From contig OU015566.1 in assembly GCA_907165135.1 (NCBI GenBank), forward strand, positions 186,001 through 250,000: a stretch of 64,000 nt of DNA. Reading direction: 5' to 3'. Shown here one piece after another: positions 698 to 53,310 of this stretch. The first letter of the stretch is position 1. Each line of letters starts with the position of its first letter. The DNA comes from Oikopleura dioica. Its lineage: Eukaryota > Animalia > Chordata. The notes beneath the pieces were generated by a model, which made no database searches, was not told the origin of the DNA, and saw only the letters and a list, made by a program, of their open reading frames with translations. A program made the translations under genes and the position numbers.

Positions 698-841
698 GTA
701 TAGTCTACCCCATTTCTATAGACTACATGACAGCGAAATAGCCTAGCAAAAGCTAAAGAACTCAAAAAATTGCATTTTTAATTCAAACTATTGAAGCCTA
801 TCCCTTGCTTTCCTGACTAGTTGCCGACCACAATACGGTAG

Positions 842-2652
842 ATCATCAGAACAGAATGCTCTTCAGGAAGAAATCGAGAAAAACAATGACATATTGACAC
901 TCGACATGGAAGAAAGCCATCACAACCTACCTTTCAAAGACATCGCCCGTAGTATGATCTCAAAATTCGGCCACCCTCATTTTAGGTTAGTGTTAGGGGG
1001 GCTCCAAGGGGGCGAAGCCCCCTAGGTTAGGCCTTAGGGTTAGGAACTGCGTACTTTTACCCAAGGGGGGGTCCCAGGAAGCGAAGCCCCCGGGTTAGGA
1101 GTAGGATTAGGAAAAATAAAAAAATCAAATTATACTTGGCCGAATTTTGAGGTCATACTACCACATCGCCTTCCTAAAGTTCATCAAAGAATCCTGCTCT
1201 TCTGTCCAATTCGTGTTCAAAGGCGATGATGACATCCTTCTGATCCCTCGAAATCTCAAACAAGAGATTGACAAGCTCAGGAACACGGACGAGTTCGAAG
1301 CTCTCGGCTGCTTGAAAAAGGAATCTCTTGCAATAAGAAACCTAAAGAGCAAGTATTTTATCCCAAAACAACTCTTTGAAGAAGATGGTCTTCCCGATTT
1401 CTATTCTGGCGCAGGCAGAGTTCGAAATTCGTTGGCAGTACTGCCACGACTGCCACTGGCAGCTGCCAATATCGGCAGTCACTTGGCAGTGGCAGTTAAA
1501 TTTTTCAAGGGCTGACAGCTGTCAACCTACTTCAACTTCGAAAGATGTTAATTTCTTTATAAAGTTTTCTTTCAAGAACCACAAAAAAAACAACGCTTAT
1601 GAATCATAAGTTATGATCCAAATTCGCTCTCGACTCGAGAGTCTCGAGACCTAAATTATTCAATCATTTTAATCAAAAGAGACATTTTTATCTCAGATAT
1701 TGTCTCTTCTATAAGTTTAAACCGTCAAAAAGACTGTTTTTAACTTAGTTTGACTTTAAAAATTCTTAAAAATAGTATCAAAATTGGCAGCTTTTGGCAG
1801 TCGACTGGTAACTGCCACTGGATAGTTTGAAAATACGGCGCACGCGCACAAACTCGCACGCAAGATTTTCGAAAACTCGCGCTCGTGCGCGCACGAATAG
1901 GATAAAAAAGGGTTTTTATTCGGAATTTGGAGTTTTTTTCCTTCCTCGGAAATTTTGCGAATACCTTAACAAAGAAAAATAATTTTTCGTTCTTTTGGAA
2001 GAGCCCCTGATTACCTTCTATAGGTATAAAGTCTTCATAAAACATAATTCATAAGAAAAATTCTTAAAAAAACCAAAATTTTCGCCAAAAATACTTGAAA
2101 ATATACCTTGAAAAATACGCAGGCGTGTTCGCACGTGCGCGCACGCACGCACGCGCACGCACGCACGCGCACTCGGATTTCGATAATAATTCGCACGCGC
2201 ACGCGATTTTTGGGTGTTTTTCCAACTATGGCTGCCAGTGGCAGCTGCCTATTTTGGCAGTCAGTTGGCATTGGCAGTCGCCATTTTAAAAAAGCTGGCA
2301 GACGCTTGGCAGTGGCAGTCGCCATTATCTTTCAGATTTTCGAACTCTGGGCGCAGGTTATTTGACAACTGGGAAATTTTCAATGAATTTGGCGAAAGCA
2401 ATTTCCGATGTATCTGTGTTGCCGTTGGACGATGTTTACATTGGTTCCCTTATTGATGCCTCTGGAATGCGAGAAAAAGCGCGAAGCTCGAATGAAATCT
2501 GCGAAGGAATTCTTCATTCAAAGGATGCCATTCGTGAAGGTGATTTCTGTGCTTTACGGAAGGTGCCTGTGGCGCACGAGATGTCAAATCCTGCAGAACT
2601 AGAATTGATATTTCACAAAGTTGCGACTGAAAACTTGGACTGCGATCGATGA
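842..2652 (+). CDS. GT31 beta-1,3-glycosyltransferase (Galactosyl_T family), paralog A copy 1, 5'-partial, spliced
   Basis: Exons ~842-947, 1171-1414, 2357-2652 join to ...DILTLDMEESHHNLPFKDIAFLKF...FVFKGDDDILL...SKYFIP...DFYSGAGYLTTG...PLDDVYIGSLI. These are typical GT31 DxD and (E/D)DVY motifs. Two TE insertions interrupt it. Confidence 0.85.
948..1162. mobile_element. hAT-like MITE inside GT31-A exon (copy at 7117-7330)
   Basis: TIR CGTAGTATGATCTCAAAATTCGGCCA / TGGCCGAATTTTGAGGTCATACTACC. Identical TSD ACATCGCC at 940-947 and 1163-1170. Confidence 0.92.
1416..2349. mobile_element. hAT-like MITE forming a GC-AG intron in GT31-A (copy at 7584-8515)
   Basis: TIR CAGAGTTCGAAA / TTTCGAACTCTG. 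TSD GGCGCAGG at 1408-1415 and 2350-2357. GGCAGT subterminal repeats. Confidence 0.93.
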
Positions 2653-2660
2653 TTCGATGC

Positions 2661-2891
2661 CGTAGTATGATCTCGAAATTCGGCCACCTATAGCCGAATA
2701 ATTCGTCTATATTTTCAAAAATTCTGAGTGAAAAATTCGGCCAAATTGACCGAATTATTGCTCAGATTTTACAAAGTATTCTGGTGAAAAATTCTGCCCA
2801 AGCTGGCCGAATTATTCATCCATATGGATCCATATTAATATATGATTTCATAAAAATTCGGCTTTTGGCCGAATTTTGAGGTCATACTACC
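2661..2891. mobile_element. hAT-like MITE just after the GT31-A stop codon (copy at 8827-9057)
   Basis: Same TIR family as 948-1162. TSD TTCGATGC at 2653-2660 and 2892-2899. Confidence 0.9.
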
Positions 2892-3011
2892 TTCGATGCG
2901 CCTTTTATTTGTGCATTTTCAATTTTTTTCTATTGTAATAAAGCAAAAGAAAATAAATATAAGAGTCTTATTGATTTTTTTTCTGAGCGGCATTCTTTCT
3001 TCGTCATTAAC

Positions 3012-3116
3012 AAGGAGTCATGGGCGGCTCCTCACAAGAGTGATCCCTCTCCGAGAGAGAGATGAGGGCCGTACACAGCAGCGCCAGAGATCTTTCCGAC
3101 GCTGCAGCCCTTCCGC
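3012..3116 (-). mobile_element. Diverged solo LTR related to the 27.5-28.6 kb element (copy ~9176-9280)
   Basis: Shares GAGTCATGGGCGGCTCC...CAAGAGTGATC...CCGAGAGAG...GGGCCGTAC.CAGCAGCGCC with the LTRs at 27492 and 28520. Confidence 0.65.
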
Positions 3117-3486
3117 TGACACTAAGAAAACCTACCGAAAGACACGTAAAAACAGCGAAAACCGACGAAAACAAAGTTAGAAATTAAGTAGGGTAGTAAT
3201 GTTGTAATGCAGTAAATGGCTGCTTTTTGCAATGGTCCATTGCCAATGGACCCTGGGCTCATTATTACCCGATTTTACACAGGTACTCAGACAGGTTCCC
3301 CAAAAACAGGAAACAGGACCTGTGACAGGTTTTAACACAGCTCAGCTTGCCGAACCCAGAATGGACCTGCTGCATCTTTTTCGAAAAAAGCTTCAGAGGA
3401 CATTTTTGAAATTGCGAGAACTCATCGGAACGGTCGCTTTTAAAATCATAATTTTGATCTCTTTTTGACCAATTAAAAGCCTATCT

Positions 3487-3561
3487 GGTTTCATCCTCGA
3501 GGATGTGATGTTTACTGGAATCTTCCGAGAAATCGCTCAAGACAAGGGCATACAAATTTAA
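3487..3561 (+). pseudogene. Possible GT31 C-terminal relic (copy 9650-9724)
   Basis: Translates GFILEDVMFTGIFREIAQDKGIQI*, resembling the GT31 EDVxxTG motif. It is short and has no clean upstream exon. Confidence 0.3.
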
Positions 3562-5426
3562 ACTGGAATGGCCCGGCATTTTGCGAGAAACAAAGAAATT
3601 AATTTAAATAAGCAGTTGCCAATGGTCCGACACACTGTTTCTTTCACTGTTTAAGAGGATCAGGAGGATTCTTCGACGACTTTACAATTAACTAGAATGA
3701 ATTTGTAAATATCCTGTCACTCTTCAATATTTCTGCATTTTTCTGTGATCAGAGCTGTAATAAATATTGTAGATACCAACAATGTCTCTTTTGTAACTCT
3801 TCGTTATTACGGGTGTAGGGCGGCTTCGTTCGCAATTTGCTAACGCCGTTCGTCATCTTGCGATCGCCGTTCGCAACGAAAAAATATCTTGCTGCGAGTG
3901 TGCGCTTCGCGCACTTTCTGGTAAAGAACTCATTGGCTTGGCAGGAGCAGTCTTTTTCTACCGCTTGGACACATTTCGAAAAAAATTGTGAACGATTTTC
4001 GGCCAAAAATTTTTCGGTTTTGCGAACGCCGGAATGGGTTTAAATGTCCAGACGAGTTAAAATTTCCTCCACTCTCAAATAAATATAAAAGAAACAAAGA
4101 TTGAATTTTTTTTCTAGATTTCCTGAATAAAAATCATACATTGATTTTCAACGACCGATGAATAAAATTTCTATGAATTCATACTACGGGAAATTATGAG
4201 CAAGAGCAATGTTCAAATTATTTTTAAAGCCATACAAATTGATTCATGTCTACAAAAAAATACTCAAATAAAAGTCGTTGGCAAGTTGGCAAGTGGTAAG
4301 TTGCCGACCCCAGTTAAGATATGCAAGTAGTTTTGCTTGCATTTTATGTTTATTGTGGACTCATTTCTAGACGTTTTTTTTTCTCGATTCAAGACCATAA
4401 GAGACAAATTTATAATCGTTGGTCGTATTTAAATTGAGCAAGTCATACAAGCGCCAAGATGTTGGCCAAACTATAACAGTTGGCAAACAGTGGAGGAAAA
4501 CGCTAGCCAGCATACTTTTTTTTATTTTTGCAAGCCCGTCATACTTATTGACTAGGCCAATTTCTCTTGTTTTTTTGTGGTTCAAGAAAGAAAACTTTAT
4601 ATAGAAATTTATATCTTTCGAAGTGACAGTAGGTTGGCAGCTGCTCGTAACTGCAAGTTTTTTTAAAATGCCGACTGCCACTGTCAATTGACTGCCAGAA
4701 TTGGCAGCTGCCAATGCTTGTCGTGACAGTACTGTGAATAAATTTTGAATTCTGCAAAAAGTATTTATATTCTCTAAAGAATCTATTTTTCGAGTGACTG
4801 ATGCTCTGGGTGGGTGGCTTTTGTCTTCACCAAATCTTTACCAAAATATGAGCTAAAATCATTGAAATCGTGAAAGTTAACGAAATTGGCATCCTTATGA
4901 GAGAGTATTCTTACAAATCAGGCGCGGAGCGCATATAAGCTCATTATTATAATCAATTTTTTAATGTCTAATGTCAAATATGAACAAATGTCGTTTTTCC
5001 AGAAGTAAAATTGCGTAAAAAGTCAATTTACCTACGCGTAAGTCGATATGCGGGCAGGGGTTAACGTATTTTCTGAGAAGAGACGTTCCTTAGAGTGGTC
5101 ATTTGTATGCTTAAAATTATCAAAATCGATCTAGCAAAGACTCAAAATCCGCTCCTTTTCAAAAATTGCCTTTTTTCAAAATCGATGCATATGTTCTGAA
5201 AGTATGGGAAGATTTTTCGAAAGAACCTGCAAAATAGAAAACACCGCGGTAAGCCTAGGTATAACTTTGAACTTAGGAGAAAGTTACTTACATAACTTTT
5301 GTTTCATTGGACTCAGAAGCTTCATTCTCCCAGGCTGGGCAGATGAAGCTTCTGGGAGAGTCAAGCCTACCCACTTGACGTAGTGGTCTATAAACAAACT
5401 TAGAAAAAAGAGAAAATTTAAAAGTC

Positions 5427-5573
5427 TTACAAATGATAAGTTTTATTTTTTTTAGAAAATTCAATTGTTTCAGACAGCTCTTTTTTTCTCAAATAATTTT
5501 CTAAGCACTGTAGCGCCAAATCGTCGTTCCATGCGCTGAACTTGTTCGCAAAGAGGTGCTTCTGTTTGAGTAG
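5427..5573 (-). pseudogene. Orphan duplicate of the GCNT last exon
   Basis: Matches 11591-11737 ([29 protein letters not shown]...). It lies in tandem copy 1, with no upstream GCNT exons in that unit. Confidence 0.8.
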
Positions 5574-5739
5574 CTAAATGAAACTCTGTTAGTAGTGGCG
5601 TTATCCTGGTGAATCTTGATTAAAATTAACACTTTTTTCTCGATTTTAAATAGCTTCGATGATGGGGAAAACAAAGATAAATTGTTTCGATAACAAAAAT
5701 TTAAAACTAAAGTTGAAAAATTCTAGTTAAAAATTAATG

Positions 5740-5985
5740 GGGTGTAGGGCGGCTTCGTTCGCAATTTGTGAACGTCGTTCGTAATCTTGCGAACGCCGTT
5801 CGCAACAAAAAAAAATCTTGCCGTGAGTGTGCGCTTCGCGCATTTTCTTGTAGACAACTCATTGGCTTGGCAGGAGCAGTCTTTTTCTTCCGCTGGGACA
5901 CATCTTGAAAAATGTTGTGAACAAATTTCGGCCAAAAATTTTTCGATTTTGCGAATGGCCTTTGCGAACGAAGCCGTCGCCACCC
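5740..5985. mobile_element. MITE, GGGTG...CACCC family (other copies ~3812-4030, 11905-12150, 18766-19005)
   Basis: TIR GGGTGTAGGGCGGCTTCGTTCGCAA / TTGCGAACGAAGCCG..GCCACCC. The 18766-19005 copy has 8-bp TSD AGTTCAAA. Confidence 0.85.
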
Positions 5986-7010
5986 GATTAATGCTACAAA
6001 CAAAAAATATTCTTTAAAACTTTTAATCCGTAAATAATCCTCTCGAAGATTTCGAGTGCATGACGATTTCGATAGAGATTTTTGATCCATTTCTCTGACA
6101 TGTTGGCAGAAAAAATATTTTTGAGAGAATGAAAGAAAGAATCACCTATAGTCCAATTTAAACAACATATTTTGGCAATTGCTATGAATCATACTTTGTT
6201 CGGGCGATAGAAACATGCAGTAGACTCGGGCATTCCCGTATAGACCCCCGTTATGATTCATTTTTGTCCGAAAAATGGAAAAATTTGTTGTCATCCGACG
6301 CAAGGCAAAATATCCATTTTAAGGCCATTTTTGAAATCCGTTGTCATCCAAAAAGTGGCCTTAAAATGGGTTTTCACTGTACACTGAGAGATAAAATATA
6401 TTATTCGAAAAAATTTGAGGTTTTTAGGTTGAAAAATCTTAGTCTCGACCACCACCCCCTTACGTCTTTTTACATCTGTATCGTAAAATCTTGTATAGAC
6501 TATACAGTATAGTCCGGGAACCCTCGACTCGCCGGGATTTTCTCGACTCGCCGGGAGTTTGCATTTTTTTCCCGGCGAGTCGAGGGTCTTCTAGAAATTG
6601 CTAGAATCATCAATTAAACCCATTTTTAACGCAGATATATTTGATATTTTAAATCATTCCTTACCAAATATTTCCCTAAGAAATGGTTCAGTAGGAGTTA
6701 TAGTTTGGGTTTAAGGTAAGGGTTTAGGGTTAGTGTTGAGAAATGGTGTTAGCGATTAGGGTTAGGGTTAGGGTTGGTGACCCTCGACTCGCCGGGATTC
6801 TGTCTGCATATTTTTTCCCGGCGAGTCGAGGATCAGGCGAAAATCCCGGCGAGTCGAGGGTCTCCCGTATAGTCTACCCCATTTCTATAGACTACATGAC
6901 AGCGAAATAGCCTAGCAAAAGCTAAAGAACTCAAAAAATTGCATTTTTAATTCAAACTATTGAAGCCTATCCCTTGCTTTCCTGACTAGTTGCCGACCAC
7001 AATACGGTAG

Positions 7011-8818
7011 ATCATCAGAACAGAATGCTCTTCAGGAAGAAATCGAGAAAAACAATGACATATTGACACTCGACATGGAAGAAAGCCATCACAACCTACC
7101 TTTCAAAGACATCGCCCGTAGTATGATCTCAAAATTCGGCCACCCTCATTTTAGGTTAGTGTTAGGGGGGCTCCAAGGGGGCGAAGCCCCCTAGGTTAGG
7201 CCTTAGGGTTAGGAACTGCGTACTTTTACCCAAGGGGGGTCCCAGGAAGCGAAGCCCCCGGGTTAGGAGTAGGATTAGGAAAAATAAAAAAATCAAATTA
7301 TACTTGGCCGAATTTTGAGGTCATACTACCACATCGCCTTCCTAAAGTTCATCAAAGAATCCTGCTCTTCTGTCCAATTCGTGTTCAAAGGCGATGATGA
7401 CATCCTTCTGATCCCTCGAAATCTCAAACAAGAGATTGACAAGCTCAGGAACACGGACGAGTTCGAAGCTCTCGGCTGCTTGAAAAAGGAATCTCTTGCA
7501 ATAAGAAACCTAAAGAGCAAGTATTTTATCCCAAAACAACTCTTTGAAGAAGATGGTCTTCCCGATTTCTATTCTGGCGCAGGCAGAGTTCGAAATTCGT
7601 TGGCAGTACTGCCACGACTGCCACTGGCAGCTGCCAATATCGGCAGTCACTTGGCAGTGGCAGTTAAATTTTTCAAGGGCTGACAGCTGTCAACCTACTT
7701 CAACTTCGAAAGATGTTAATTTCTTTATAAAGTTTTCTTTCAAGAACCACAAAAAAAACAACGCTTATGAATCATAAGTTATGATCCAAATTCGCTCTCG
7801 ACTCGAGAGTCTCGAGACCTAAATTATTCAATCATTTTAATCAAAAGAGACATTTTTATCTCAGATATTGTCTCTTCTATAAGTTTAAACCGTCAAAAAG
7901 ACTGTTTTTAACTTAGTTTGACTTTAAAAATTCTTAAAAATAGTATCAAAATTGGCAGCTTTTGGCAGTCGACTGGTAACTGCCACTGGATAGTTTGAAA
8001 ATACGGCGCACGCGCACAAACTCGCACGCAAGATTTTCGAAAACTCGCGCTCGTGCGCGCACGAATAGGATAAAAAAGGGTTTTTATTCGGAATTTGGAG
8101 TTTTTTTCCTTCCTCGGAAATTTTGCGAATACCTTAACAAAGAAAAATAATTTTTCGTTCTTTTGGAAGAGCCCCTGATTACCTTCTATAGGTATAAAGT
8201 CTTCATAAAACATAATTCATAAGAAAAATTCTTAAAAAAACCAAAATTTTCGCCAAAAATACTTGAAAATATACCTTGAAAAATACGCAGGCGTGTTCGC
8301 ACGTGCGCGCACGCACGCACGCGCACGCACGCACGCGCACTCGGATTTCGATAATAATTCGCACGCGCACGCGATTTTTGGGTGTTTTTCCAACTATGGC
8401 TGCCAGTGGCAGCTGCCTATTTTGGCAGTCAGTTGGCATTGGCAGTCGCCATTTTAAAAGCTGGCAGACGCTTGGCAGTGGCAGTCGCCATTATCTTTCA
8501 GATTTTCGAACTCTGGGCGCAGGTTATTTGACAACTGGGAAATTTTCAATGAATTTGGCGAAAGCAATTTCCGATGTATCTGTGTTGCCGTTGGACGATG
8601 TTTACATTGGTTCCCTTATTGATGCCTCTGGAATGCGAGAAAAAGCGCGAAGCTCGAATGAAATCTGCGAAGGAATTCTTCATTCAAAGGATGCCATTCG
8701 TGAAGGTGATTTCTGTGCTTTACGGAAGGTGCCTGTGGCGCACGAGATGTCAAATCCTGCAGAACTAGAATTGATATTTCACAAAGTTGCGACTGAAAAC
8801 TTGGACTGCGATCGATGA
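7011..8818 (+). CDS. GT31 paralog A copy 2 (5'-truncated duplicate)
   Basis: Same exons as 842-2652 (7011-7116, 7339-7582, 8523-8818). No N-terminal exons were found in the duplicated unit. Confidence 0.75.
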
Positions 8819-11590: not shown

Positions 11591-14500
11591 TTACAAATGA
11601 TAAGTTTTATTTTTTTTAGAAAATTCAATTGTTTCAGACAGCTCTTTTTTTCTCAAATAATTTTCTAAGCACTGTAGCGCCAAATCGTCGTTCCATGCGC
11701 TGAACTTGTTCGCAAAGAGGTGCTTCTGTTTGAGTAGCTAAATGAAACTCTGTTAGTAGTGGCGTTATCCTGGTGAATCTTGATTAAAATTAACACTTTT
11801 TTTCTCGATTTTAAATAGCTTCGATGATGGGGAAAACAAAGATAAATTGTTTCGATAACAAAAATTTAAAACTAAAGTTGAAAAATTCTAGTTAAAAATT
11901 AATGGGGTGTAGGGCGGCTTCGTTCGCAATTTGTGAACGTCGTTCGTAATCTTGCGAACGCCGTTCGCAACAAAAAAAAATCTTGCCGTGAGTGTGCGCT
12001 TCGCGCATTTTCTTGTAGACAACTCATTGGCTTGGCAGGAGCAGTCTTTTTCTTCCGCTGGGACACATCTTGAAAAATGTTGTGAACAAATTTCGGCCAA
12101 AAATTTTTCGATTTTGCGAATGGCCTTTGCGAACGAAGCCGTCGCCACCCGATTAATGCTACAAACAAAAAATATTCTTTAAAACTTTTCCTGCCCATCT
12201 GAGCGTGACGGCCGTTTGAAAATGGCTATTTTTTCCGAAACCGCTTCACTTCTCCTTTGAAAGAGCCTATCTCTTCAAATCTAGAAAAAAAGGATACCAG
12301 TCAAACTTTGTGAGAGGTTTTTAGGAATTGTAGTGGTTTTACAGAATTGCTCTAATTACGATCACGCCGCGGGGCAAAGCAAAGTTTGCCACGCGAGCAC
12401 GGCGCGTAAGTGAAATGATGGCGCACTTGCGCTGGCGAAATAATCGACTCTAAAACGCGCGCTCTTCCTGAAAAACCAAATAATCCGTTTCTAAACGCCG
12501 CTCTTCAAATTATTCTCACGTCCTGATGCTCGAAATCCGATTAGTCCGCTAAAATGGAATTATTCCTTTTCCAGTGACAAAATCCGTTGGTAACGAGTTA
12601 TTACGTTCAATGTTCAATTTATCCGATGGAAACGATACGATCGAATAACAGCCGATTAATCTACTGGGAACCCGAAAATTTGAAAAACTATAAAAACCGC
12701 TCACCATCTCTCTCACAGTCATTCTCACTTTTGCTCGCTCAGAGAATAGATCAAATAAAAGCTCAAAAACTTTACTCTTTTATACACAGCCAACTTTGCT
12801 CACTTGTCTGTATATTTCTCTTGTGTTCACTCATTTGCATAGGTTGCAAAACCATTACAGAATTATATTACTATCTTTAATTACTATCAACAACTCTTCT
12901 GGCCAAAACCGTAAGAGTTTTTCGTGAAGAAGAGGTTCGTTGGATCTGGTTCTGAACTAGGGCCTAGTTTGAAAATTTGGATATTTCCATATTCTCTCAA
13001 TGAAAAATTAATTCATGCGTTCATGCCTTAAGGACTTATTTAAATTACCCAGGGCAAATCGCCTGCTCCATAGATGCAGATTCCATGGCGATAGCTTCCA
13101 TAGCACTTTGGATAGAGTCCATTTTGAACGTGACCTCGCCATTTAACAATTCTTGCGAGACTCTGAAAATTTATTTGTTAGTTTTTTGACTGTTATTATT
13201 TTTTTGTAATAAGATGACTTCGTGCGTGTTTTGTGATTATTTTTGGTTGACGCGCGGGTCTGGATTTTGGCCAAAACGAAAGCGCTTATGAGCGAACTCG
13301 CTAAGCGAATCCAGACCCCTGGTTAACGTTTAGTCGTTGGGCCGAAATGTTTATTCATTGGGAGATCATTGATCTCAGATCAACGAAAAAAAATGTCGAA
13401 GAGTATATTGATTTTTTTATCTTTTGTAAAAAGCGAACCTGGAATTCATTCTTGTCATATTGGCGATTTGACGGTAAGGAGCCTGGCGCTCCTGGAAATC
13501 TGCTTAGTGCTGCCCAGAGAAACTCGTCTGGCGTGAGCGTATCGCGGCTCCAATGGAGAATCTCTAACACAGTTGAATTGTTAAGCGTGTAGTCAACGAA
13601 CGCACGGGAGAGGATATTGTACGCGGAGCCTGCAAATTTTCCGATTCCGTCTTAAACACATTTCTAACAATTCAAATTGCTTATGTATTTCTTACGTGGT
13701 GGTGAGGAATTCTCCCGCTTTGTACTAACAACCTCAAGCTCTCCGTTTTCCCCTTTCTCCAACTTGAAGCGCAACCTTAGTCGATCTTCTTTTTGTGGAG
13801 TCATCGGCACGGATTCGATTTCGTTCTGTGGTGTTATAAAAGAAGGCTTTCCATGAAAAACATTGACTATTTTTCTAGCCATGATTAAGCCTTGCACAGA
13901 TATTGACCCACAGTGGACAAATAACGGGTGTAGGGCGGCTACGTTACAAGTAGTTAAAATTGTAACGGCGTTACAAAAATTCAAAATCGAAATCATCGAA
14001 CGAGTGTGCGCTTCGCGCTTGAATTAAAGGAAACTAAATTTTGGTACACATTATCAGTGGAATGAATGACAGTGGAATGCACTTTCTGTCCCAGCGCCTC
14101 TCCCCCCCCCCCTTCTTACCTATGCGGTTAAAGTTTTGCGACCCAAAAAATACGGGATGGTCGGACTCATTACCGAAAATTTTGGTAACTCATTACCAAT
14201 TTTTGGTCGTTCATTACCAATTTATTTTGATTTTTTCGAGTAAATTGCGGGAGCACAAATTCGCTCTTCGAATGAAAAAAAATTGACAGTTTTTCGTCGA
14301 ATTTACCGTAATGCCTTACCAAAATTGGAAATGTGTTACCAATTAGAAATGTGTTACCAATTGGAAATGAGTCCGACCGTTTCCCAAAAAAAAGTCGGAT
14401 CAAGATTGTGCGGGTCTGTGCGGTTTTTTCCGAATCAATACCACTTTTGGTACAAACCAAGACAAGGAATAAATACGGCATGAAGTGACGGGGGAAAACG

Positions 14501-17500
14501 GACTCGGTTGGCCCAACTCCCGCCGAGTGTGAACGTGCAGGAGGTGTCAAGCCGAGTGAAGGAGATGCAAGGGACAACGCCGCCGGTGTGAACTCCTGCA
14601 GAGACTGCTCCTGGGCCCAAGTTGGCGCAAGTCTCGGTGTGAATCCTTGAGTAAAAAGAAATTAGGTGCATGTTGAGCCGGAAATCATGATCAAGCTCAG
14701 CCTGGATAATCTTCAAAAATGAAGATATGGAAGACTAAAAATTAGAATTCTCTGAAAACTTCCATGATAGGGTAAAATTTGATTCTGATTCTGATGCCGC
14801 TTTCGTTAAAGTCTTTTGATGTTAGATTTTTGAAATAAATCACTTCCAATTATTATCAGCTCCAGGGCTGTTGATTCCGGGTCCTTTCGGATTACCCGCG
14901 ACTAAAAAAAACATTTAGGTGTCAACTAATCTCACAAAAATATTTTCACCTATTATAAGGCAGCCCGAGCAATTCCGACACCTCGACCAGAAAATCACCA
15001 ACTAGCCTCTTACTTATACTGTTTTGTAAAAACTTAGCAGAAAAACTTTCAATTTAAACTTCAACCTCGTCACTTCTTGCCTTATTTGTTCCTTTTCTTG
15101 TTTTGACCCGATTTCTTTCTCTTATGAATGACCCCCGTTTATTTGGCCAAACCAAAAAAATAGGTGTAAAGATAGGAAGTTACAAAAAAGGAAGTGATGT
15201 TTTTGGAATGGGTTTTCATTGGCCGGTAGGCAAAATGAAGCCATCTTATTGGTCTTCCAAAAACGCACGTCCTTTTTTTCTCACTTCCTTTCTTTATTCT
15301 TACTTTTTTTAATTTGTGCCCGTTTATTGACGGACCAATCAGTCCCGCTTCACCTGTTAATTTGGCACGTTTTTAATAAATAATCGTATTTAACAATCTG
15401 CTACTGAAAGATCACTTTTTTCATGGCTAGAAATAATTCACTTTTGTTCATGGAAAGCCAAGATATAAGACAAATAGCGGACCATTTCTGCATTCGTCTT
15501 GAGAGGAAAGTCCGTTCCGCATAAATTGATGTAGTATTTCCATCTGATCGGGTGATTTAAAAGATCTTTCATACAGTTTAAATCCGCTTGCAGTCTCAGA
15601 ACGGTTGAAATCGGGTGTCGGGCGCTGAGGTTATGCCATAACCAGGTTATGCATTTTCCTGGATTTTGCATAACCTGGTTATGCATTCTCGATTTAAATT
15701 GGAACAATTTGAGTCTTAATTAGCTATGGGAATAAATTATCACTGATAATTTATCAGGCATTCTTAAATAATTTGGAAGTCATAAATGCAACCTATCCTT
15801 GAATAATGAGCGTAAGTGACGGTTTCTCTTTTCGACGCTAAAAAGACATTCGGAAAGCAGCTGGCGAGGCTTTCAAGGGCTTCATAAAACTCATCAGGAG
15901 ATTTCTTATCAGCGTGGATGCAGTAGACATTCTGCGGATGATAAATCGACCGTAAAAGGCGCTAAAACAGAGATAAGCCAAATTTTTTTTTAAAAAGGGT
16001 TTAACCAAAAAAATGAACCAATAAAATAGGATGAATCTATTTTGAAACGATAAGCATTTTTACTTAAATTTCCTTATTTCAACATTTTTTACGCTTATCA
16101 GGGGTCTGGATTCGCTTAGCGAATTCGCTCATGAGCGAAGCGAAGCAGAGCTTTACCAAAAATTTTCGCGAAAATATCGCCCATAAGAAAACGTTCTAAG
16201 AGTTGTAAATTTTGCTGATTGAACTAAGCTTTTTCTTTCGCTTTTTGGAAAATTTTTTCGCTTCGCTTCGCTTTCGAAATTTTGATTCGCTTTCGCTTTA
16301 AATTTTTGAAAAATTTTCGCTTTCGCTTCGCTTTCGCTTTTCATTTTTGGCCGAAATCCAGACCCCTGCGCTAAAAGATAGAAAATTTATGAGTAATCAG
16401 CTATTTTTATTGAGTATGTGCGCTTTAAATGCCCGCTCCGCGGGTTTAGTGGTAAGAAAATCAAAGATGGGAAAACAATAACAAAAGAATACAAATGACT
16501 GTATTCTTATCTTATAATTTCCAATTTTAAGGCTACGGGGGTCGACGAGGCTCTAACCATGGCCTTATTCCGGGAAACCCAAAAGAGTTGGGGGCTTGAA
16601 TCTTTCATTAATAGTTAATTTGAACTTAGATCATGACTTGTATAGAAGAAAACCTAAAGTTGATAGGCATTTTCTTGCCAAAAAATCGCTTCAAAGTTGG
16701 CATCTCGACCTATATTAGGGTAAAATTGGTTGAATCTTCCAACCTTTCGGGATCCCGAATGTTTCGGGATTTCCCGAAACGTTCGCAGTAAAAAAGGGCC
16801 TTTTTGTCTTCGACCCTTTCGGGGATGATTTTCAATAGTTTCTATCCTAGAAAATATTTTAAGCCAAACAGTAACGTCAAAGTACATCTTTATTGAAGAA
16901 AATGGAGGCGCGAAGGAAAAAAAAATAATTAACTCGAAAAAATGGATCTTTAACTCATGAAGTTCTCTATAAAACAGGCGCGGAGCGCACACATTCTCTT
17001 TGACTACAAATTCAACATTTATAAAAGGTCTGGACTTCTTAGACCATCGAATTCGACGAAGGCAGGTAGAGTTATCTTTTTGGTTAGTAAAATGCCCTAA
17101 TTCGGCATTTAGGCCACTTTTTTTAACGTTATCCTCACCAAAACTCCCGAAAGATTCGGGCGATCCCGAAAGGTTCCGGAAATCCCGAAAGATTCGGGAA
17201 ATCCCGAAAGATTCGGGATCCCGAAAGGTTGGAAGTGACAACCGGTAAAATTGGCTTCAATTCTGAAGAATTGAACCTATAAACCTACACTTAGTATATT
17301 TTTAAATAAAATTTCAAACCTTTTGAAGCCTTTGTATACAAAGAAATCGTGGATAGATTTGGAATTTTGGTATTCCAATACCAAAGTCCGCAAAAAATGT
17401 CAATTTTTAAAAATTTAAAATCGGGTGTGCGCTCCGCGCCTGTATTATACGATACTTTAGGATTGTTTTTAATAATTTCTCGGGCGGAAAATCCAAATTG

Positions 17501-20050: not shown

Positions 20051-20165
20051 CAGCAGTATTCTTCATAAAAATATTATTCAGATGAAACATTTATCAGGAA
20101 CCGGTCAAAATACTACTAGCGCGACTCAAGGAACGATATTTATATAGGATACTTTTTTACCTTAA

Positions 20166-43483: not shown

Positions 43484-44032
43484 AAAAATCTTTATTTCTG
43501 TCTCGCCGTTAAATTAAAGAAAGAAAAAAATATAACTGTATTCGTTCTTATTAGTTGAAAAGAGTATTTTCTTATTACCTCCTAACTATCAGTTCTTGAC
43601 TATAGACTAAAGGCATTTACCAATCTCTTGAGAGTCGAGGCCAGAATTCTAAATAAACTCGAGTCGAGTTGAGTTACTTGACCACGTGAGGTACCGCTCG
43701 AATCAACGTGATTTATGAATTGTGGGGTTGGCTTGTTTGTAATTACCTAATTTTTTGGCCCGTTTTGAACTAATAATGACATTCTTTCCAAGAAAAGGCG
43801 CAGAGCGCACCAGAGCCCCTGTTAAATTAAAATTCTGAAACATTGTTTTCAAGTGCAGCTCAACGGTCTGCATTTCAGGTTATGCACTCTTAATAAAAAT
43901 CATATAAATTGATATGTAACAGATAGTTCAAGTGCGCTTCGCTCCTGATCTTAGAGAACAAATCGTTTTTAAGTCTTTTGGAACCAATTAAGCCTCAAAT
44001 TTCTCCAATTTAAATCAAGAATGCATAACCAG

Positions 44033-44850: not shown

Positions 44851-45816
44851 ATAACCAGGTTATGCAAAATCCACGAAAATGCATAACCTGGTTATGGCAT
44901 AACCTCAGTGCCCGACACCCGGGTCAGCTCGCAGACCCTACGCGCTCTACATCCGGAAAGACCTTAACTCGGCAACTTCGGCAGACAATTTTTTCATCAA
45001 ATTCTGCCTTTCTGCCTGTATTTTTTCGAAGAGATACCATTCGATTGATAGAAAAATTCTTTCTAAATTCGAAGGCTACAATATGTTGCAATTTATGGCC
45101 AAAAATTTAAGCTTTTTTAGCAAATATGTGGTTTTCTACCATCTGACCCGCGGATCGGACTTTATCTCTTAATTTTTCACTGAGATACGAATGAAATGAA
45201 GTTTTTTTTGTCATATAACTATCAAAAAACATATCTTGTGCTTTAAATATTTGATTGAATAAGAATTGCTGGAAAAAATGGACCGTTTTCGAGCTTTTTG
45301 TATTGACCGCCTTGTCTGCCGAGTCTGCCGAAAATTATACAATAAAAAAAATTTTGTTCGTTTCAGTGCGACGAAACAAATTCTAAAATGTCGAAAAATC
45401 TCGACTTCGTGAACTAAAATAAAAATTTTGTAAATTAAAATTAATCCCCTCAAATAAAGCTAGGACTTATTTTCTCATGAGCAAATAAGATGCCGATTCA
45501 GAGATCTCTGAGCAAGAACTGAAATAAAAATTTTATTTTTCGTCTTAATACTCCATATTACTCGCATAAAACTCCTAAGTTAACGAGCACTCATCGAAAA
45601 TAAAAAATGCATTGTCGATTCTAGAGCATATTATTATTTAAAGAAATATAATTAAAGAGTGACCTCAATTTGTTCATATTCCCAGATTGAGATAATAAGT
45701 CTTAACAAGGATGCAAAAAGAAAAATCAAACAAAAAGCTTTTCATTGGAATTCTTGTTTTCACTGTAAGAGAATTTTTGAGGTCAGCTTATTTAATTGTT
45801 TTTGAAAGCTTATCAG

Positions 45817-46049
45817 TTTGTGGAATATTCTTGGACACATAAAAGACGTGATGTCTGATGAAGTTGAGCAAAAGAGCCTTCTGGTCAAGGTACAATTTGA
45901 AGACTCGTACAATAAAACACTAGAGAGTGAACCCGAGAACTGCACAAGAGATGAGACAGACATCTTTCTCGACTTGGCTCTTCTTGAAAGAAATTATCCT
46001 GAACTGAAAGGAAAGCGGCGCAAAATAGAAGGAAAATGTATTTATCCAG
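45817..46049 (+). CDS. Probable exon of unknown function, possibly spliced to GT31-C
   Basis: Open frame LWNILGHIKDVMSDEVEQKSLL...KIEGKCIYP flanked by ttatcag| and |gtgaaa. In phase with the acceptor at 48018. Confidence 0.45.
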
Positions 46050-46139
46050 GTGAAAATGAAAAACAGTTGGTTGCCTTTTTCCCGAACTCCTTAATTATAT
46101 GTTTTATTATATTATGAACTAAGCTTAGGTCCTGCTCAG

Positions 46140-47959
46140 CAGAGTTCGAAATCTGGTAGAAAATCCGTGCTCCCGTTCCCTCCCTGCTCCCTTACCCAGA
46201 AAAAAGGGAGCTCCCTCGTAAAATATCCGTGCTCCTGCTCCCTTTTTGCTCCCAAAAAAGAGAGCTCCCATAGGGAAATTTAACTCCCTTTTTTTAAATT
46301 TCAAAAATTTTCAAAGTTTTTCATTTTAAACTTTCGAAGTCAACATCATCGTTGTCTGGTTATTATATAGCGATGAAATAAAAAGTATAAATAGGCATTC
46401 GTTTAAATGATTAAAAGGTGACGACACGTGATTCTGAGATTCTTAGGAGTAAGAGATATCTACATATCATTTTGTTCCTTAGAGCGAGCTGATTTCAAAA
46501 ATGCAAAAAAAAATTTTTTCGGTCACTTGGTTGGGCTCTGGGTCCCCAAAATCACCTTTATATTTTTTGCATTTTTGTAATCAGCTCGCTCCAAGGAACA
46601 AAATGATATGTAGATATCTCTAACACTTAAGAATTTCAGAATCACCTTCGTCACCTAATGATTAAGCTAGACTTCAATGTTTTCTTCTTCGCTAATCTTT
46701 AAAATCAAAGATAAATACATTATTTGGAAATAATAAAAAAAAATCTTGGTAGATTTTCGGCTGTTTATTCATATGAAATTTCAGAAGAGACATTTAAAAA
46801 AATATCTAATCAAAAAACGTCTCTTCTAATAAAAATCCGCGCAGACGCGGTATCCCAATCAAGATGCTTATAATCTGAGAAAAATACATTTGCTGAAATT
46901 ATAAAATCAAACTAGATGTAATTTTGGCTATTTATTTATATGAAATTTTAAAAGAGACGTTTATATCTACATAAGGGTCGGACATTTTCGGAGGATGAGC
47001 GCAGACGGAACTCAAATTTTTTCTGGAAGTACCTCAGGTCATGTACTTTCGTGTGCACGGGTTGTGCACGGGATTGCCACATTTTTGGTATTGTGATTTT
47101 TTGGGTTAAAATTTGAAAAAATGAAATTTTTCAGAATCATTTTTGTATTTTTCAAAACGGAATCTATGGTATAAAAACAGCTCTTTAACCATCCAGAACT
47201 GTCAGAAATACAATAATCAATATTCCGTGATTTCGGGCCGTCTCAGCCCCGTTCCGTGATTTTTAATTTAAGGGCTTGACGGCCCTTCGGGCCGTCTCAG
47301 CCCCGTTCCGTGATTTTTTAATTTAAGGGGCTTGACAGTGGCAGGGTTGTCCGAGGGGATCAATCTCAGTTACGTCCCCAACCCCACCCACACCCATTTT
47401 TTCACAAAATTCACATTAACCGAGTTCTAAGCTGAATTATGGCTTTTAATTTTTTAAAATTTTATTCTTTAAATTTTAAGATATAATTTCACATTCAGAC
47501 CATTTTTGACCCGAAAAAAGGTCAATTTTGAACATATTTCGCGTCCTTTTTGGTCCTCTTAGGGTAATTTTGCAAATTTTAAAATAATCGATTTTCGGCC
47601 CCTACACCCTTAATTTTAGAAATTTTTTTGCTTTTTAAGAAGTCTTTGGAGGTCCTTAAAACACCCTTAAAATATCAGTTCCGTCTGCGCTCACCTTCCT
47701 AGAATGTCCGACCCTAATCTACATCAAGTCGAAAAAACGTCTCTTCTTAGAAAACTACTATAGAATAAGTTTTTCCCAGTTTTCGGCGCGCAGATAAGAT
47801 TCTACACTAAAAATTGTTTATTTTCAAAAATTTTCAAAATTGGGAGCTCCCAATTTACTCACAGCCCAGGAAACCTGTGCTTCTGCTCCCTCCGTGCTCC
47901 CAAAAAAGAAAGCTCCCTTTTGGGGCTCCCAATTTTGCTCCAAACGATTTCCAACTCTG
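46140..47959. mobile_element. hAT-like CAGAGTT-family composite element with GCTCCC repeats
   Basis: TIR CAGAGTTCGAAAT / ATTTCCAACTCTG. TSD CTGCTCAG / CTGCTTAG. Confidence 0.85.
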
Positions 47960-48080
47960 CTGCTTAGTTAGCATACAATAATTGGATTGACGTTTAAATT
48001 CTGTTTTTCTTTTCATAGGTCAGAATAAGGGAAAATATCGAGTTCGACTTCATTTTTTGTCTGCATTTCTGAGTTCACTG

Positions 48081-51000
48081 ATGAGCTTGGGCATAGTTGG
48101 AAAAACAACCGAAACTAGCGTGCGCGTTCGCTCTTTTGTCTCCGGGTGCGCGTGCGCAAGTATTCTTCTTTACATTGTAATTGGATCTTTTAGATATAAC
48201 CTCGACTACAATGGTTTTCCCAGACCTCTAAGTTCTCATTGAAAATTTATATTATCATAGATTGGAAAATTTATATATTTTTTTAATACAGTGATAACCC
48301 AGTTTAAGGCCGGCCCTTTTAAGGCCACTTTTTGGAAAATCCCCAAAATCTGTCATCCTCAAAAAATCCATTTTAAGGCCACTTTCTTTCAATCTCTATT
48401 GATGATTTCAAAAACTTTTGTGGGGCCGGAAATCGTAAAAACTGCAAGTGCAGTTTTCTTCAGCTCCTCGAGACGAGTTGAATGATGGGTCTAACTCTTG
48501 ATAACTCTAAGGATTTACCGGTTTACCGGCTAGTTACCGGAAAATACGTTGTCACCGGCCGTTTTTGTTCTAGAAGTGGTCAACAGATGCCCGACCCAGG
48601 AAACTGTTCCTTATGGTCAGTTCTATTGCAGGCTAAAAGATGAAAGTCGTATCATTACTACGAAGAGAGTTATCACTAAAAACAGTAAATTTTGCATAAA
48701 TTTCGTTGTCGCTGCACGTTCCTGATTTTTAGTCCCATTTCCGCCAAAAATAGTATTTTAGTGATAACTATCTTCGGAATAATGATACGACTTTCATCTT
48801 TTAGCCTGCAATAGAACTGACTATAAGGAACAGTTTCCTGGGTCGAGCATCTGTTGACCACTTCTAGAACAAAAACGGCCGGTGACAACGTATTTTCCGG
48901 TAACCAGCCGGTAAACCGGTAAATCCTTAGAGTTATCAAGAGTTAGACCCATCATTCAACTCGTCTCGAGGAGCTGAAGAAAACTGCACTTGCAGTTTTT
49001 ACGATTTCCGGCCCCACAAAAGTTTTTGAAATCATCATTCAATATTGAAGCGTCACTTGAAAAAGCTTATATTATTTGACTGCGTGATGTCTCGTGTTTT
49101 ATGTTCATTTCTATTTTTTGGTACTCTTCGATAATTCTTTCTCGAATTATTTAATTGACGATGATTTCTTACGGTCCTCTTTGAATTTTCACTTGCATTT
49201 TGAGTCCAAGAATTCCAATTTATCATTATATAGGCGTGTAAAAACACGCAGATGAATTTCAAGAGCATTTTTCTTTCGAAAAAGCTCAGTTATTGTCTTC
49301 TACACGTCACTATTCTTTGACGTCTTCACTAGAACCTCTTCATATCTTTTTTCTAAGAATTTTTCATCGTGATCCTTTTTCAGACGTGTCTTTCAGATAA
49401 AATTTTTGAAATGATTTAAGAAAGAATCACCTTGAATTCAATTCAAAGGTCACATTTAGAAAAATCCATGATTAATAAACTTTATATTATTTTTTTCGAG
49501 CGAAAGAAATATGCGATAACCCTATGACCCTCATTCATAATTTCTTATCCCAAGAAAGGAAAAATTTGTCCTCATCCGACTCGAGACAAAAAATACCCAT
49601 TTTAAGGCCACTTTTGAAATCCTCTGTCATCCGAAAATCGGCCTTAAAATGGGTTTTCACTGTAATTCAAAATTTTTTTTAGATTATCCGTTTCTGAATG
49701 AGATGCTTCGTTTCAATAAGAACATGAAGCCTTCAGTTATCCAACAGCCAGATGAATGTCAATTTCAAGATTCTAGTTTACCTTCTCTGATTTTCGGAAT
49801 CAAGTCAATGCCAAAAGCGATTCAAGCAAGAGAAACTTTGAGGAGAACTTGGTTAAGAAAAGAAATATGGAAAACGCTTGGATTTGAAATCAAGGTTGTT
49901 TTTATAACTGGAAAAGACAAAGGCTGGGGTCCGCAACAAATATAGAATATTTAAAAAAGGTTTTAAAAATCTAAGCCAGGATGCTACACCGCGCTGCTAT
50001 CCTAGATATATGGTCGGAAGGGAGCCCGCGCGTAAATAGGCAAAATAGAAGAACAAACTCATCCGAGGGGCTACGGTCAGTCAGTGTTTGAAAATTTGGT
50101 CGAAACTAAGATGGGCGAGTGAGCGCGATGCTTTGATTTTTTCGTGAGTGAGCGAGTGCGAGCAGAAGCTCCAAAATTTTTCATGAGAGATTGAGCAAAA
50201 GCGCTCCCTCGTTCGCTCAAGCTCGCTCGTGAATCACGAGTTGTGATGATTAAGCGCTTGGTATTTTAGTCTCTCAATGATGGCTTCATAAGTGGCTTCA
50301 TCTGCTTAAGGGGGTGGTGGTCGAGAATATTTTTTCAACTCTTCGAAATTCTGATTTTATTTTTGAGATCCTTGATAAAAAGGGAACATTTTTTGTCCCT
50401 AGCATTTTTTGATTTGATCTAGTTTACTTAAGAAAATTTTCAATTTTATACCGGGAATTTAAGAATTTTCGAAATTTTGATTTTTATAATTTGTCCAAAA
50501 ACCGATGATAATTTTATTTTTGCTGCGAGAGATTGTTAAAATACTAGATAGGACTTATAAAAATGCAAAAATTGAGAATATTTGCCATTTTTACGAAAAA
50601 TTTAGTTCAAATTGTGTAAAAAATGACGATTTTCAGGAAAACAACATTATTATAATGAGCTCCTGCTTCCTCAAAACGATACACAATATTTATAAAACTA
50701 TCTCGCCCACACGCGCAAGGGTCTGAAGTTTAGACTCTGAACTTTCTTCAGAATAAATTTTATTTTGAAAAAAATTTAAGGGTTTCTTCGAAATTTTGTC
50801 AAGAGATAGGTCCATTCTAGAAGCATTTTTCGAGTTTTTTCCGAGAATTTATTTTTTCATACCTAGTCGCCCACATAATTTGAAGCCTTTTAAACCCATT
50901 TTCGTTGCAAAAAGAAAAAAAAATTTTGAAAAATTTTGAGGTAATTTTGTTGAAAGAAATCCGATTCTCGACCACCACCCCCTTAAGAGCTTCATTTGCA

Positions 51001-53310
51001 CAATATCATATTATAATTATATTGTCAGTTCACTTAATTATGGAATTTTGGACATTTTTTGTGCCAACATTTTCGCAAAAATGTCCAAAAATTTGATACA
51101 AGCTACCAAAAAAAATGTCCAATCCAAAATGCTTAAAAATTTTTTTCTGAGGAAAATCTCAATCATCCTCTGTTTCATCCTTCTTCTAAAGACGAAGAAT
51201 GTTCCAGAGGTACGAGATCAAACTTCAATCTTATCTTTCTCAAAGAAAAAGTGTGATTTTTGATAAAAAAACGTCATATTTGGCAAAAAAAAAGATAATT
51301 AAAAATTTTTGCACAGAATATGTCCGAAAATTTAATACATGCATTTTTGAAAAGTGTCTCAAAAAAACCCCATAAAATTGCAAAAATGTCCAAAAATTTG
51401 ATGTCCAAAAATTCCATAAAAAACTGTATGTGCAAAAGAGGCTTTTGTGCCAGTGAGGTTAAAAAACCATATCAGAGCTTGTGTAAGGAAAAATCCAACC
51501 ATCAGCAAAAATAACATCAAGTTTATTTTCAATTCTTCAAAAAGAATTACAGTTGACTCGCACAGGAGTCTGAACTATGGACCCGCACAATTTGGCCCTT
51601 TTTCCGAATTTCGCGAAAATTAATGAAATTCGCTCAATAAGCCATCTTTGTGAATATCTGTCAAATTTGCTTGCTCAAACGTATTTTGTAAGATGTATTC
51701 ACGAGATAAATGCTATTTCTTACTCTTTATTCTGATAAACACGTAGAATTTACGGGGATAATTGACAAAAAAATGAGATTTTAACATTTTAGGGCTCTAT
51801 AATTGATCTTTTTTTGAAGGAGCAGCAAATTAATCGGAATTTCGGACCCGCACGATTCGGCCCTTTTTCGAGAAATCTGCAAAACAAAAAAGGTCCAAAT
51901 TGTGCGAGTCAACTGTATATTTATTGATCTCAGATATTAAGAATCGATAAGAATAATTTCATGAAATAGAAAATTTTAAATTTGAAAAATAGGGAGCCTT
52001 TTGGAGCAGGTTGAAAGCAGGAACACGGATTTTTTCAAGATTTAAAACGCTTTTTTTGCTTATCTGTTTTTTCCGCAATAATAAAAACCTAGATGGTTTT
52101 TAAAGAAGAATATTTTTTAGGTTCCACTTGCAGACCCTAATACAAAGAGCTCAAGGACGAAGCTAGAATAAATAAAGACTTGCTTGTTCTTGATTTAGAG
52201 GAGAGTCTCTTCAATCTTGCATTCAAAGACGTCGGATACCTCGATTTCATCAAAAACTTCTGCGATAATGTTGACTTTGTCTTCAAGGGTGACGATGATA
52301 TTCTCCTCATCCCGATAAACCTCAAAAAACAACTAGAAAAGATAACAAATTCCGATTTCGAGGCCACTGGTTGTCTTAAACTTCCAACATGGACGAAACC
52401 CATTCGAGAACTTAGCAGTAAATCTTAGGGAAGACCATTTTATTTTTCATTTCTATGCGTTTGTTCGCTTGGGCTTAAAAACGCGTCGTCAATATCATAT
52501 TGTCAATGTGTATTTTAACATGTGATGAAGAAATATTTACACAAAAAGTATTCATATGAGTCTAGTTTTAAAAAAAATGCCTAAAAAGAAAAAATTCGAA
52601 GAGTTTTATAGTAACTTGTAACCTATAGCTTTTAAATTTGAGAAAATTTTTTTTGAGATAAAAGTCCTAAAAATAGCGCTTGAAAATGCAATTTATTTTT
52701 CGAGGACGGACGGTGCCGATACCAATCAAAAATTGGTACCCGGTACCAAAAAATGTCACGATACCGAACCAAAATTATTTTTAAAAGGTTTATTCGCTAA
52801 ATAAATGAAGTTTCCGGACCTTTCAGCCGCGGAGCGGACATAAGATTTTTGATGAGTCAGAAAAAATGCTTGACTTTGGTACCGGGTACCAATTTGGTAC
52901 CGGCACCGTCCTTTTCCTTATTTTTTATAAATAAAATGGTCATCCCGTTTCAATACTTCGTCCCTGAGCAAGTTTATTCCGAAGATAGTTATCCTGCATA
53001 TTTTTCAGGACTTGCCTATATAACGACAGGAAATTTTTCATTAAAATTGGCAGAAAAAATTCCTTTTGTTCAAATAACTCCAATTGATGATGCTTATGTT
53101 GGCTCTTTAATTGCCGCGACGGGTCAAAGTGAAAAAATGCTTCAATCATGGACTTTCTGCGAAGGCGTCAGAGCAAGCGCGAAGGCAAAACGCTACAGAA
53201 CTCGATGTGACCTACTCCGTCTGACCGTGTATCACAAAGTGACTGACTATCAACAGATGGAAACAATGTTCAATGATCTTGTTTCAAACAATCACACTTG
53301 TATTTTCTGA
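48081..53310 (+). CDS. GT31 beta-1,3-glycosyltransferase, paralog C, spliced
   Basis: Exons ~48081-48213/48231 (TM), 49683-49922, 52148-~52422, ~52954-53310. Motifs LIFGIKSMP...RETLRRTW, KVVFITG, LDLEESLFNLAFKD, FVFKGDDD, SKYFVP, YPAYFSGLAY, PIDDAYVG. Confidence 0.88.
48289..49662. mobile_element. Tc1/mariner-type MITE containing a foldback insert (48400-49037)
   Basis: ta|CAGTGATAACCC ... GGGTTTTCACTG|ta. Internal ~282-bp inverted arms. Confidence 0.85.
49924..52140. mobile_element. Degenerate CTGGGGTCGG-family element forming a GC-AG intron in GT31-C (nested MITEs 50310-50982, 51550-51915)
   Basis: TIR CTGGGGTCCGCAAC / CTTGCAGACCCTAA. TSD GACAAAGG / TACAAAGA. Confidence 0.78.
52426..52948. 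mobile_element. Degenerate hAT-like element interrupting the GT31-C SKY codons
   Basis: TIR TAGGGAAGACCATTTTATTT / AAATAAAATGGTCATCCCGT. TSD remnants GTAAATCT / TTCAATAC. Confidence 0.78.

Follow-up and report, generated by a model that had tools for sequence, protein, structure and literature searches.

Whether transposons that land inside coding exons simply break the genes that they strike or can become introns is the question raised by this locus. The window, that is, the whole stretch of 64,000 nucleotides analysed here, comes from the larvacean Oikopleura dioica (GenBank assembly GCA_907165135.1, contig OU015566.1, positions 186,001 to 250,000 of the forward strand) and holds a transposon-rich cluster of glycosyltransferase and sulfotransferase genes. 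Elements bounded by terminal inverted repeats (TIRs) lie within the coding sequence of four of these genes, namely three glycosyltransferases of family GT31 (GT31-A with elements A0, A1 and A2, GT31-B with element B, and GT31-C with elements C1 and C2) and GCNT, a core-2/I branching enzyme of family GT14 (elements G1 and G2). A mixed reading is put forward here at roughly even odds (probability about 0.5): the older elements, in GCNT and GT31-C, would be transposon-born introns, the young elements would be recent insertions, and A0, A1 and A2 would be insertions in a dead gene fragment.

An earlier note on this DNA had described eight hAT-type TIR elements with 8-bp target-site duplications (TSDs) inside coding exons. 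TIRs are present at all eight sites, and when the ends of each element were refined by aligning its two termini against each other, none lay more than 1-2 nt from where the note had placed it (Table 1). TIR motifs were counted across the window and compared with the expectation from shuffled sequence; three of them occur 13, 11 and 8 times against 0.67, 0.5 and 0, and the motifs are real repeat families, far above chance. A further element, A3, which is absent from the earlier note, belongs to the family of A1 and starts 8 nt past the stop codon of GT31-A. Perfect 8-bp TSDs, the mark of miniature inverted-repeat transposable elements (MITEs) of the hAT superfamily, flank A1, A2, A3 and B, whereas G1 and C1 have adjacent 10-bp TSDs that match at 7 of 10 positions (the chance of a match of at least 7/10 is ~0.006 for each) and no TSD was recognisable at the refined borders of G2 and C2. 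The claim that the elements differ in age is borne out by this range from perfect to decayed TSDs.

The hAT label does not extend to all of the elements. The consensus of hAT TIRs is YARNG, which the CAGAG... TIR of A2 and B fits and the TGGGGTC, GGCTTTCC and GGGAAGACC termini do not; the first letters of A1 and A3 are C-GTAGTATG, and their terminal base is non-complementary. In the TGGGGTC family (A0, G1 and C1) the adjacent repeats are of ~10 bp and match at 9/10 in a young copy at 55443-55864. This length falls within the 9-11 bp of Mutator-like elements (MULEs) and suggests that the family may be Mutator-like rather than hAT, an assignment by TSD length alone for TIRs of just ~12-18 nt. 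The TIR comparison supports the earlier proposal of at least four families, which by their termini and duplications would comprise two hAT-like families with 8-bp TSDs, the TGGGGTC family with ~10-bp TSDs, and two elements (G2 and C2) that could not be classified. Support was also found for independent gains between the GT31 paralogues. As a separate observation, the sites of A0 in GT31-A and of C1 in its paralogue GT31-C, both elements being of the TGGGGTC family, are separated by no more than ~3-4 codons, and the 3' flank of each starts with ATAC; a preference for certain targets may be behind this, or else a shared insertion of great age.

Table 1. Positions of the elements, their host genes and the related Okinawa genes (window coordinates unless a locus is named).
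Feature	Position	Strand	Description	Second copy
A0	820-832	+	3' TIR alone, TGGGGTC family; TIR matches those of G1 and C1	6989-7001
A1	948-1162		215-bp MITE; TIR 25/26; perfect 8-bp TSD ACATCGCC at 940-947 and 1163-1170	7117-7330
A2	1416-2349		934-bp hAT-like MITE; TIR CAGAGTTCGAAA; perfect 8-bp TSD GGCGCAGG	7584-8515
A3	2661-2891		231-bp MITE of the A1 family; perfect 8-bp TSD TTCGATGC	8827-9057
GT31-A, apparent gene fragment	833-2652	+	coding pieces 833-947, 1171-1415, 2358-2652; stop 2650-2652	~7002-8818
G2	13845-15459		1615-bp element in GCNT, after Branch profile position 114; TIR GGCTTTCCATGAA; no recognisable TSD	
G1	18016-19093		1078-bp TGGGGTC-family element; TIR TGGGGTC.GGAACCCAC, 17/18; adjacent 10-bp TSD, 7/10	
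GCNT (core-2/I branching enzyme, GT14)	13049-19336	-	coding pieces match Pfam Branch	
GCNT exons	19336-19094, 18014-17964, 15961-15798, 15594-15460, 13844-13696, 13650-13439, 13162-13049	-	listed high to low	
GCNT canonical introns	17963-15962, 13695-13651, 13438-13163	-	GT-AG	
GCNT inferred intron	15797-15595	-	GA-AG, 203 nt	
B	33092-33665		574-bp hAT-like MITE of the CAGAGTTCGAAA family, in the stem region of GT31-B; perfect 8-bp TSD ATTTGAAG	
GT31-B	32817-34390	+	signal-anchor exon, stem, catalytic exons; short canonical introns	
C1	49925-52139		2215-bp TGGGGTC-family element with nested repeats; adjacent 10-bp TSD, 7/10	
C2	52428-52946		519-bp element; TIR GGGA.GACCATTTTATTT, 17/18; no recognisable TSD	
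GT31-C	45941-53310	+	exon ..46049; GT-AG intron 46050-49682; coding pieces 49683-49922, 52148-52422, 52954-53310	
Okinawa g9803 and g9805	L002 6001-7533 and 9016-11425		tandem GT31-A-like genes, PAR chromosome	

The exons around these elements were formerly continuous, as the note had held. The pieces of GT31-A match the Pfam Galactosyl_T profile at positions 39-68, 69-150 and 150-190, so that the register continues across A1, inserted between KDIA and FLKF, and A2, inserted between YSGAG and YLTTG. The pieces of GT31-C match the same profile at 2-31, 41-107 and 133-188, with C2 splitting the conserved S-K/Y-F motif, and those of GCNT match Pfam Branch at 17-71, 73-114 and 162-206, with G1 at the start of the Branch domain in the motif F-P/S-I-A-F. 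No stop codon was found in the translated coding pieces of the host genes, in agreement with the description of the catalytic exons as free of other stops.

Uninterrupted relatives were found for the GT31 sites. An exhaustive profile search with the middle exon of GT31-C returned GT31 proteins of larvacean type, and the closest named proteins are g9803, g9805 and g1922 of O. dioica OKI2018_I69 (Okinawa). Since these are ~80% identical over GT31-A, the window is placed by its protein likeness in O. dioica or a very close relative, in a lineage other than Okinawa. The comparison comprised the Okinawa loci L002 (g9803 and g9805) and L004 (g1922) and the environmental larvacean contig L001, in which the catalytic domain is a single uninterrupted exon that covers the sites of A0, A1, A2, C1 and C2. 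The A1 target (ACATTGCT) and the A2 target (GGCGCAGG) occur once each in the relatives, and the C1 and C2 sites are continuous there as VVFIVGYDLDLRDEA and SSKYFIPKQ. The GT31 interruptions are therefore derived insertions, with TIR and TSD borders at sites uninterrupted in relatives, as expected of transposon-born introns. MITEs that struck pre-existing introns are ruled out at the GT31 sites by the continuous exon of the homologues. The intron ahead of the catalytic exon of GT31-C is a canonical GT-AG intron swollen by MITEs and interrupts the same codon as in Okinawa; with its position common to both, it provides the ancestral-intron control.

Non-autonomous DNA transposons, from no fewer than four TIR families, have thus inserted into once-continuous exons, and they are read here as two groups. 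The older group would consist of G1, G2, C1 and C2, whose TSDs have decayed and around which the reading frames are still open and conserved. Around G1 and G2, ~1.1 kb of GCNT coding sequence is family-typical and contains no stop and no frameshift; ~0.9 kb of GT31-C coding sequence flanking C1 and C2 is likewise open, with no stop and no frameshift. Splicing of the older elements is favoured because these stretches stay open despite TSDs decayed to 7/10, and on a rough estimate open frames would be unlikely under neutral drift since insertion. Judged from the DNA, these four elements would most likely be removed from the mRNA as transposon-born introns, C1 and G2 by way of GC-AG sites built from TSD or TIR. 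The young group with perfect TSDs (A1, A2, A3 and B) would be recent insertions; A0, A1 and A2 would be plain insertions in a dead, 5'-truncated copy of GT31-A, and B may be a segregating allele, either spliced or gene-breaking. Logan contigs of a DNA run (X27) span the borders of G2 (15306-15638) and G1 (18969-19379) with 0 differences, so that both elements exist in a second DNA sample.

Splice sites were considered on paper among the pairs that annotators allow for O. dioica, that is, GT, GC, GA or GG with AG (together GN-AG), plus GT-CG and GT-AA. In this species 11-12% of introns are non-GT/AG, mainly GA/GC/GG-AG, and annotators accept the latter (PMC8008620; bioRxiv 10.1101/2023.05.09.539028). 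The earlier note had relied on the fact that removing an element plus one TSD restores the reading frame, which is no evidence of splicing because it is true of any insertion into an open reading frame (ORF). The statement itself fails for two elements: the frame at G2 is kept if the element alone or with 9 nt is removed and broken if 8 nt go with it, and at C2, where 5 and 7 extra nt lie between the TIRs and the homologous codons, the S-K-Y-F motif is recovered solely by removing the element with 12 flanking nt. Nor is the existence of some splice solution evidence, since dozens of in-frame solutions per element lie within 40 nt of each border. More specific solutions were sought, and three elements offer sites of the GN-AG class. 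For A2 there is a footprint-free GC-AG solution at 1415..2356; another, for C1 at 49923..52147, gives ITGKDK/ELKDE and a length equal to that of the L001 homologue; and G2 can be joined in frame at 15458..13847, by GC-AG sites within its TIRs that leave a small footprint. GCNT offers an internal parallel. Its GA-AG intron (15797-15595) is inferred because the frame between Branch positions 71 and 73 requires it, so the gene model itself appears to rest already on the known non-canonical intron class of the species. A small palindromic element (gcataaccaggttatgc ... gcataacctggttatggc) is also found within this intron, which has a short stem (AGGTTG / CAACC) a few bases inward from its two junctions.

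GT31-A has to be read apart from the other genes. Its coding homology to Okinawa starts at 833, directly after the A0 TIR; Galactosyl_T profile positions 1-38 are missing, and no 5' exons were found in the window by tblastn at relaxed thresholds. Neither the 5' TIR of A0 nor an exon for the N-terminal 270 residues of the Okinawa relative was found within 12.4 kb in the window. Window positions 1-6024 are repeated at 6173-12189 with 99.8% identity as a 6.17-kb tandem repeat, between whose copies there are 2 substitutions and 11 single-base indels, none of them in exons and many in runs of A or T. The GT31-A set therefore occurs twice, or the assembly duplicated it; the repeat arose either by duplication very recently or by the duplication of haplotypes in the assembly. 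From its sequence GT31-A looks like a gene fragment, and at least the second copy is one; because it is 5'-truncated and duplicated, A0, A1 and A2 are uninformative on domestication. The earlier note had named pseudogenes as the outcome that would undo its reading. Loss of essential coding parts, as in a pseudogene, was found for GT31-A, whose Okinawa relatives are also decayed, and is not shown for GCNT, GT31-B or GT31-C. Upstream of GT31-A, a run of telomere-like TTAGGG repeats (gggttagggttagggtt...) lies at 541-610 in a repeat-rich stretch.

Transcripts, proteins and environmental sequences were searched for the window genes. GCNT was chosen for RNA mapping because it combines two elements with control introns in one gene; three oligo-dT RNA runs (1.5-1.8 Gb read per run) and the DNA run X27 were mapped on 13380-19379 at a likeness of at least 90%. 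The RNA runs are labelled by species alone, and O. dioica comprises deeply diverged cryptic lineages, so the lineage behind them may differ from that of the assembly. RNA reads in this interval are confined to 16180-16379, at a depth of ~20-25 in two runs. They are partial alignments with back-and-forth and strand-switch joints, and the site is the core of a GGGGTCTGGATTCGC...-type MITE; these reads probably come from MITE copies transcribed elsewhere. A protein search with the middle exon of GT31-C alone gave no match, searches with the proteins P0002 and P0004 returned Okinawa and environmental proteins only, and an exact look-up of one ORF of the window returned no record.

Several of the results weigh against splicing of the older elements. 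The GCNT exons received 0 reads in the three RNA runs, which, given the species-level labels and the diverged lineages, is compatible with no expression or with the wrong lineage; in a run search, none of the runs listed for the GT31-C stretch was an RNA run; and no transcript-derived protein of the window's lineage was found in the protein collections searched. In the JGI metagenome contigs, both a gapped pattern for the spliced or empty G1 junction and a 24-mer of the GT31-C middle exon came back blank. Among the splice-site pairs known for O. dioica, A1, B, G1 and C2 have no footprint-free solution that keeps the conserved residues. The sliding options at B are CA-AG, GC-AA and GA-TT, no GN-AG solution at C2 preserves the S-K-Y-F motif, and the junctions implied by homology are CC..GA at G1 and TC..AA at C2, plus shifted versions. 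The argument from age is built on TSDs of just 10 nt. No last exon of GCNT could be defined, and the N-terminal membrane-anchor exons of GT31-C were not found in the window by tblastn at relaxed thresholds, so that either gene may be incomplete. In Okinawa, g9803 has an in-frame stop (SK*F) at the Y of S-K-Y-F, and g9805 carries an insertion of ~0.8 kb with a duplicated coding stretch at its flanks, after which the frame changes; the GT31 subfamily thus tolerates gene death. The annotated g9805 protein skips ~50 residues of the catalytic domain.

These points lend themselves to an account in which all eight elements are ordinary gene-breaking insertions, redundant glycosyltransferase paralogues are on the way to being lost or persist as segregating null alleles, and none of the elements is spliced. 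The truncation and duplication of GT31-A, the decayed Okinawa paralogues, the RNA results for GCNT and GT31-C, the missing anchor exons and the four elements that have no workable known splice-site pair all suit this account, which is a serious possibility short of even chances. It has to contend with ~1 kb each of open, family-typical frame in GCNT and GT31-C despite the 7/10 TSDs of G1 and C1, with the presence of G1 and G2 in a second sample, so that they are not the private lesions of one animal, and with the in-frame GC-AG sites of C1, A2 and G2, which are of the type used by the species. A bolder reading, that O. dioica also removes TIR-bounded transposons that lack GT/GC/GA/GG-AG termini (A1, B, G1 and C2), where paired TIRs may join the junctions, is considered unlikely.

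An ordinary origin has also been weighed for the two GCNT elements, which may have landed in short pre-existing introns and thus be intron expansions. Canonical GT-AG introns swollen to 2-4.5 kb by nested MITEs are common in the window (Gal3ST 26747-31246; GT31-C 46050-49682; GCNT 15962-17963; CHST ~55050-57766, with its GT donor at 57766), so that introns of the window also take insertions, and the empty-site comparison covers the GT31 sites alone. The eight elements differ from the swollen introns, however, in having no canonical splice sites beside them. At G1 neither a GT donor nor an AG acceptor is present in the space that separates the TIRs from the conserved codons, the F-S-I-A-F codons begin one nucleotide past the TIR, and the adjacent 10-bp TSD consists of coding sequence; for the GT31 genes, the homologues prove a continuous exon. 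Expansion of pre-existing introns is accordingly judged quite improbable. Least credible of all is that the interruptions are assembly artefacts. The copies of the 6.17-kb tandem repeat differ almost solely by single-base homopolymer indels, so that an assembly duplication is possible there, but independent X27 Logan contigs cross the borders of G1 and G2 with no difference, the elements have proper TIRs and TSDs, and further copies of their families lie in the window.

With respect to known systems, the closest likeness is to another larvacean, Fritillaria borealis, the MITE-derived non-canonical introns of which were reportedly described by Henriet et al. (2019, Curr Biol). Such introns are established in this species (PMC13326754; PMC11282704), and Oikopleura itself has been tabulated among species with intron gain by transposon insertion, citing Denoeud et al. 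2010 (PMC3443670). No paper detailing TIR/TSD elements in O. dioica exons was found in the literature searched. In Fritillaria, as in the window, interruptions at lineage-specific positions with TIR/TSD borders are transposon insertions in exons; in Fritillaria they are tolerated by the U2 spliceosome. The two cases differ in that splicing in Fritillaria was shown by Iso-Seq and RNA-seq whereas the window elements are known from DNA alone. They also differ in their termini: those of Fritillaria are mostly AG/AC or AG/AT with a YAY triplet, a signature that the junctions implied by homology at G1 and C2 do not show, and those of the window elements are on paper GC-AG (C1, A2 and G2) or none. 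Fritillaria, moreover, belongs to a lineage with duplicated U2AF subunits, which O. dioica lacks (PMC13326754). Within O. dioica, the GC-AG solutions of A2, C1 and G2 and the GA-AG intron of GCNT fit the non-canonical GN-AG class of the species. In kind, the window would be a further instance of the transposon-to-intron conversion known from larvaceans.

More distant parallels are instructive as well. Introners, of which an account is said to have been given by Huff et al. in 2016, are likewise non-autonomous DNA transposons. In algae and other eukaryotes splice sites arise on insertion from their TSDs and termini (Gozashti et al. 2022, PMC9860276), but there one family carries co-opted splice signals into hundreds of introns, whereas the window holds at least four unrelated families with most copies outside exons. 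The nonconventional introns of euglenids (PMC11282704) have no GT-AG ends, pairing terminal inverted repeats and TSD-like repeats, and they would offer the closest analogue should A1, B, G1 or C2 turn out to be removed; they differ in belonging to another kingdom. Ordinary exonic insertion alleles and unitary pseudogenes fit GT31-A, which is truncated, duplicated and struck three times, and the young element B, but they do not account for the conserved frames that stay open over long stretches beside the decayed elements of GCNT and GT31-C.

Should the older elements prove to be spliced, several stages of the birth of introns from transposons, from insertions with perfect TSDs to those with decayed TSDs and from GC-AG termini to termini with no AG, would be found next to one another in a chordate that can be cultured and for which RNA resources are dense. 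It would then be possible to test directly which insertions can be neutralised by a spliceosome, and whether the U2AF duplication proposed for Fritillaria is required for odd splice sites to be tolerated. Removal with no GN-AG termini at all, in a species that lacks the U2AF duplication, would be the truly new possibility; splicing of new introns in the manner of Fritillaria would in that case date back further, and be more widespread among larvaceans, than supposed, and it could be watched in a laboratory species with segregating insertions. If the elements are not spliced, the window shows fast loss of redundant glycosyltransferase paralogues to transposons in a fast-evolving genome.

Beside the four host genes, the window encodes a Gal-3-O-sulfotransferase (Gal3ST) and a carbohydrate sulfotransferase (CHST). 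The median intron of O. dioica is ~49 nt long, and many canonical short GT-AG introns are found in the window. On account of these introns, and of closest proteins that are those of O. dioica, an origin of the DNA from Fritillaria borealis was rejected. Larvacean GT31 proteins of this subfamily (P0004, P0152, P0153 and P0006) have a cysteine-rich module, C..C....EA...C...DDC.GI...F.LR.GP, between membrane anchor and catalytic domain, and upstream of GT31-C the last part alone of this module was found, at 45941-46049.

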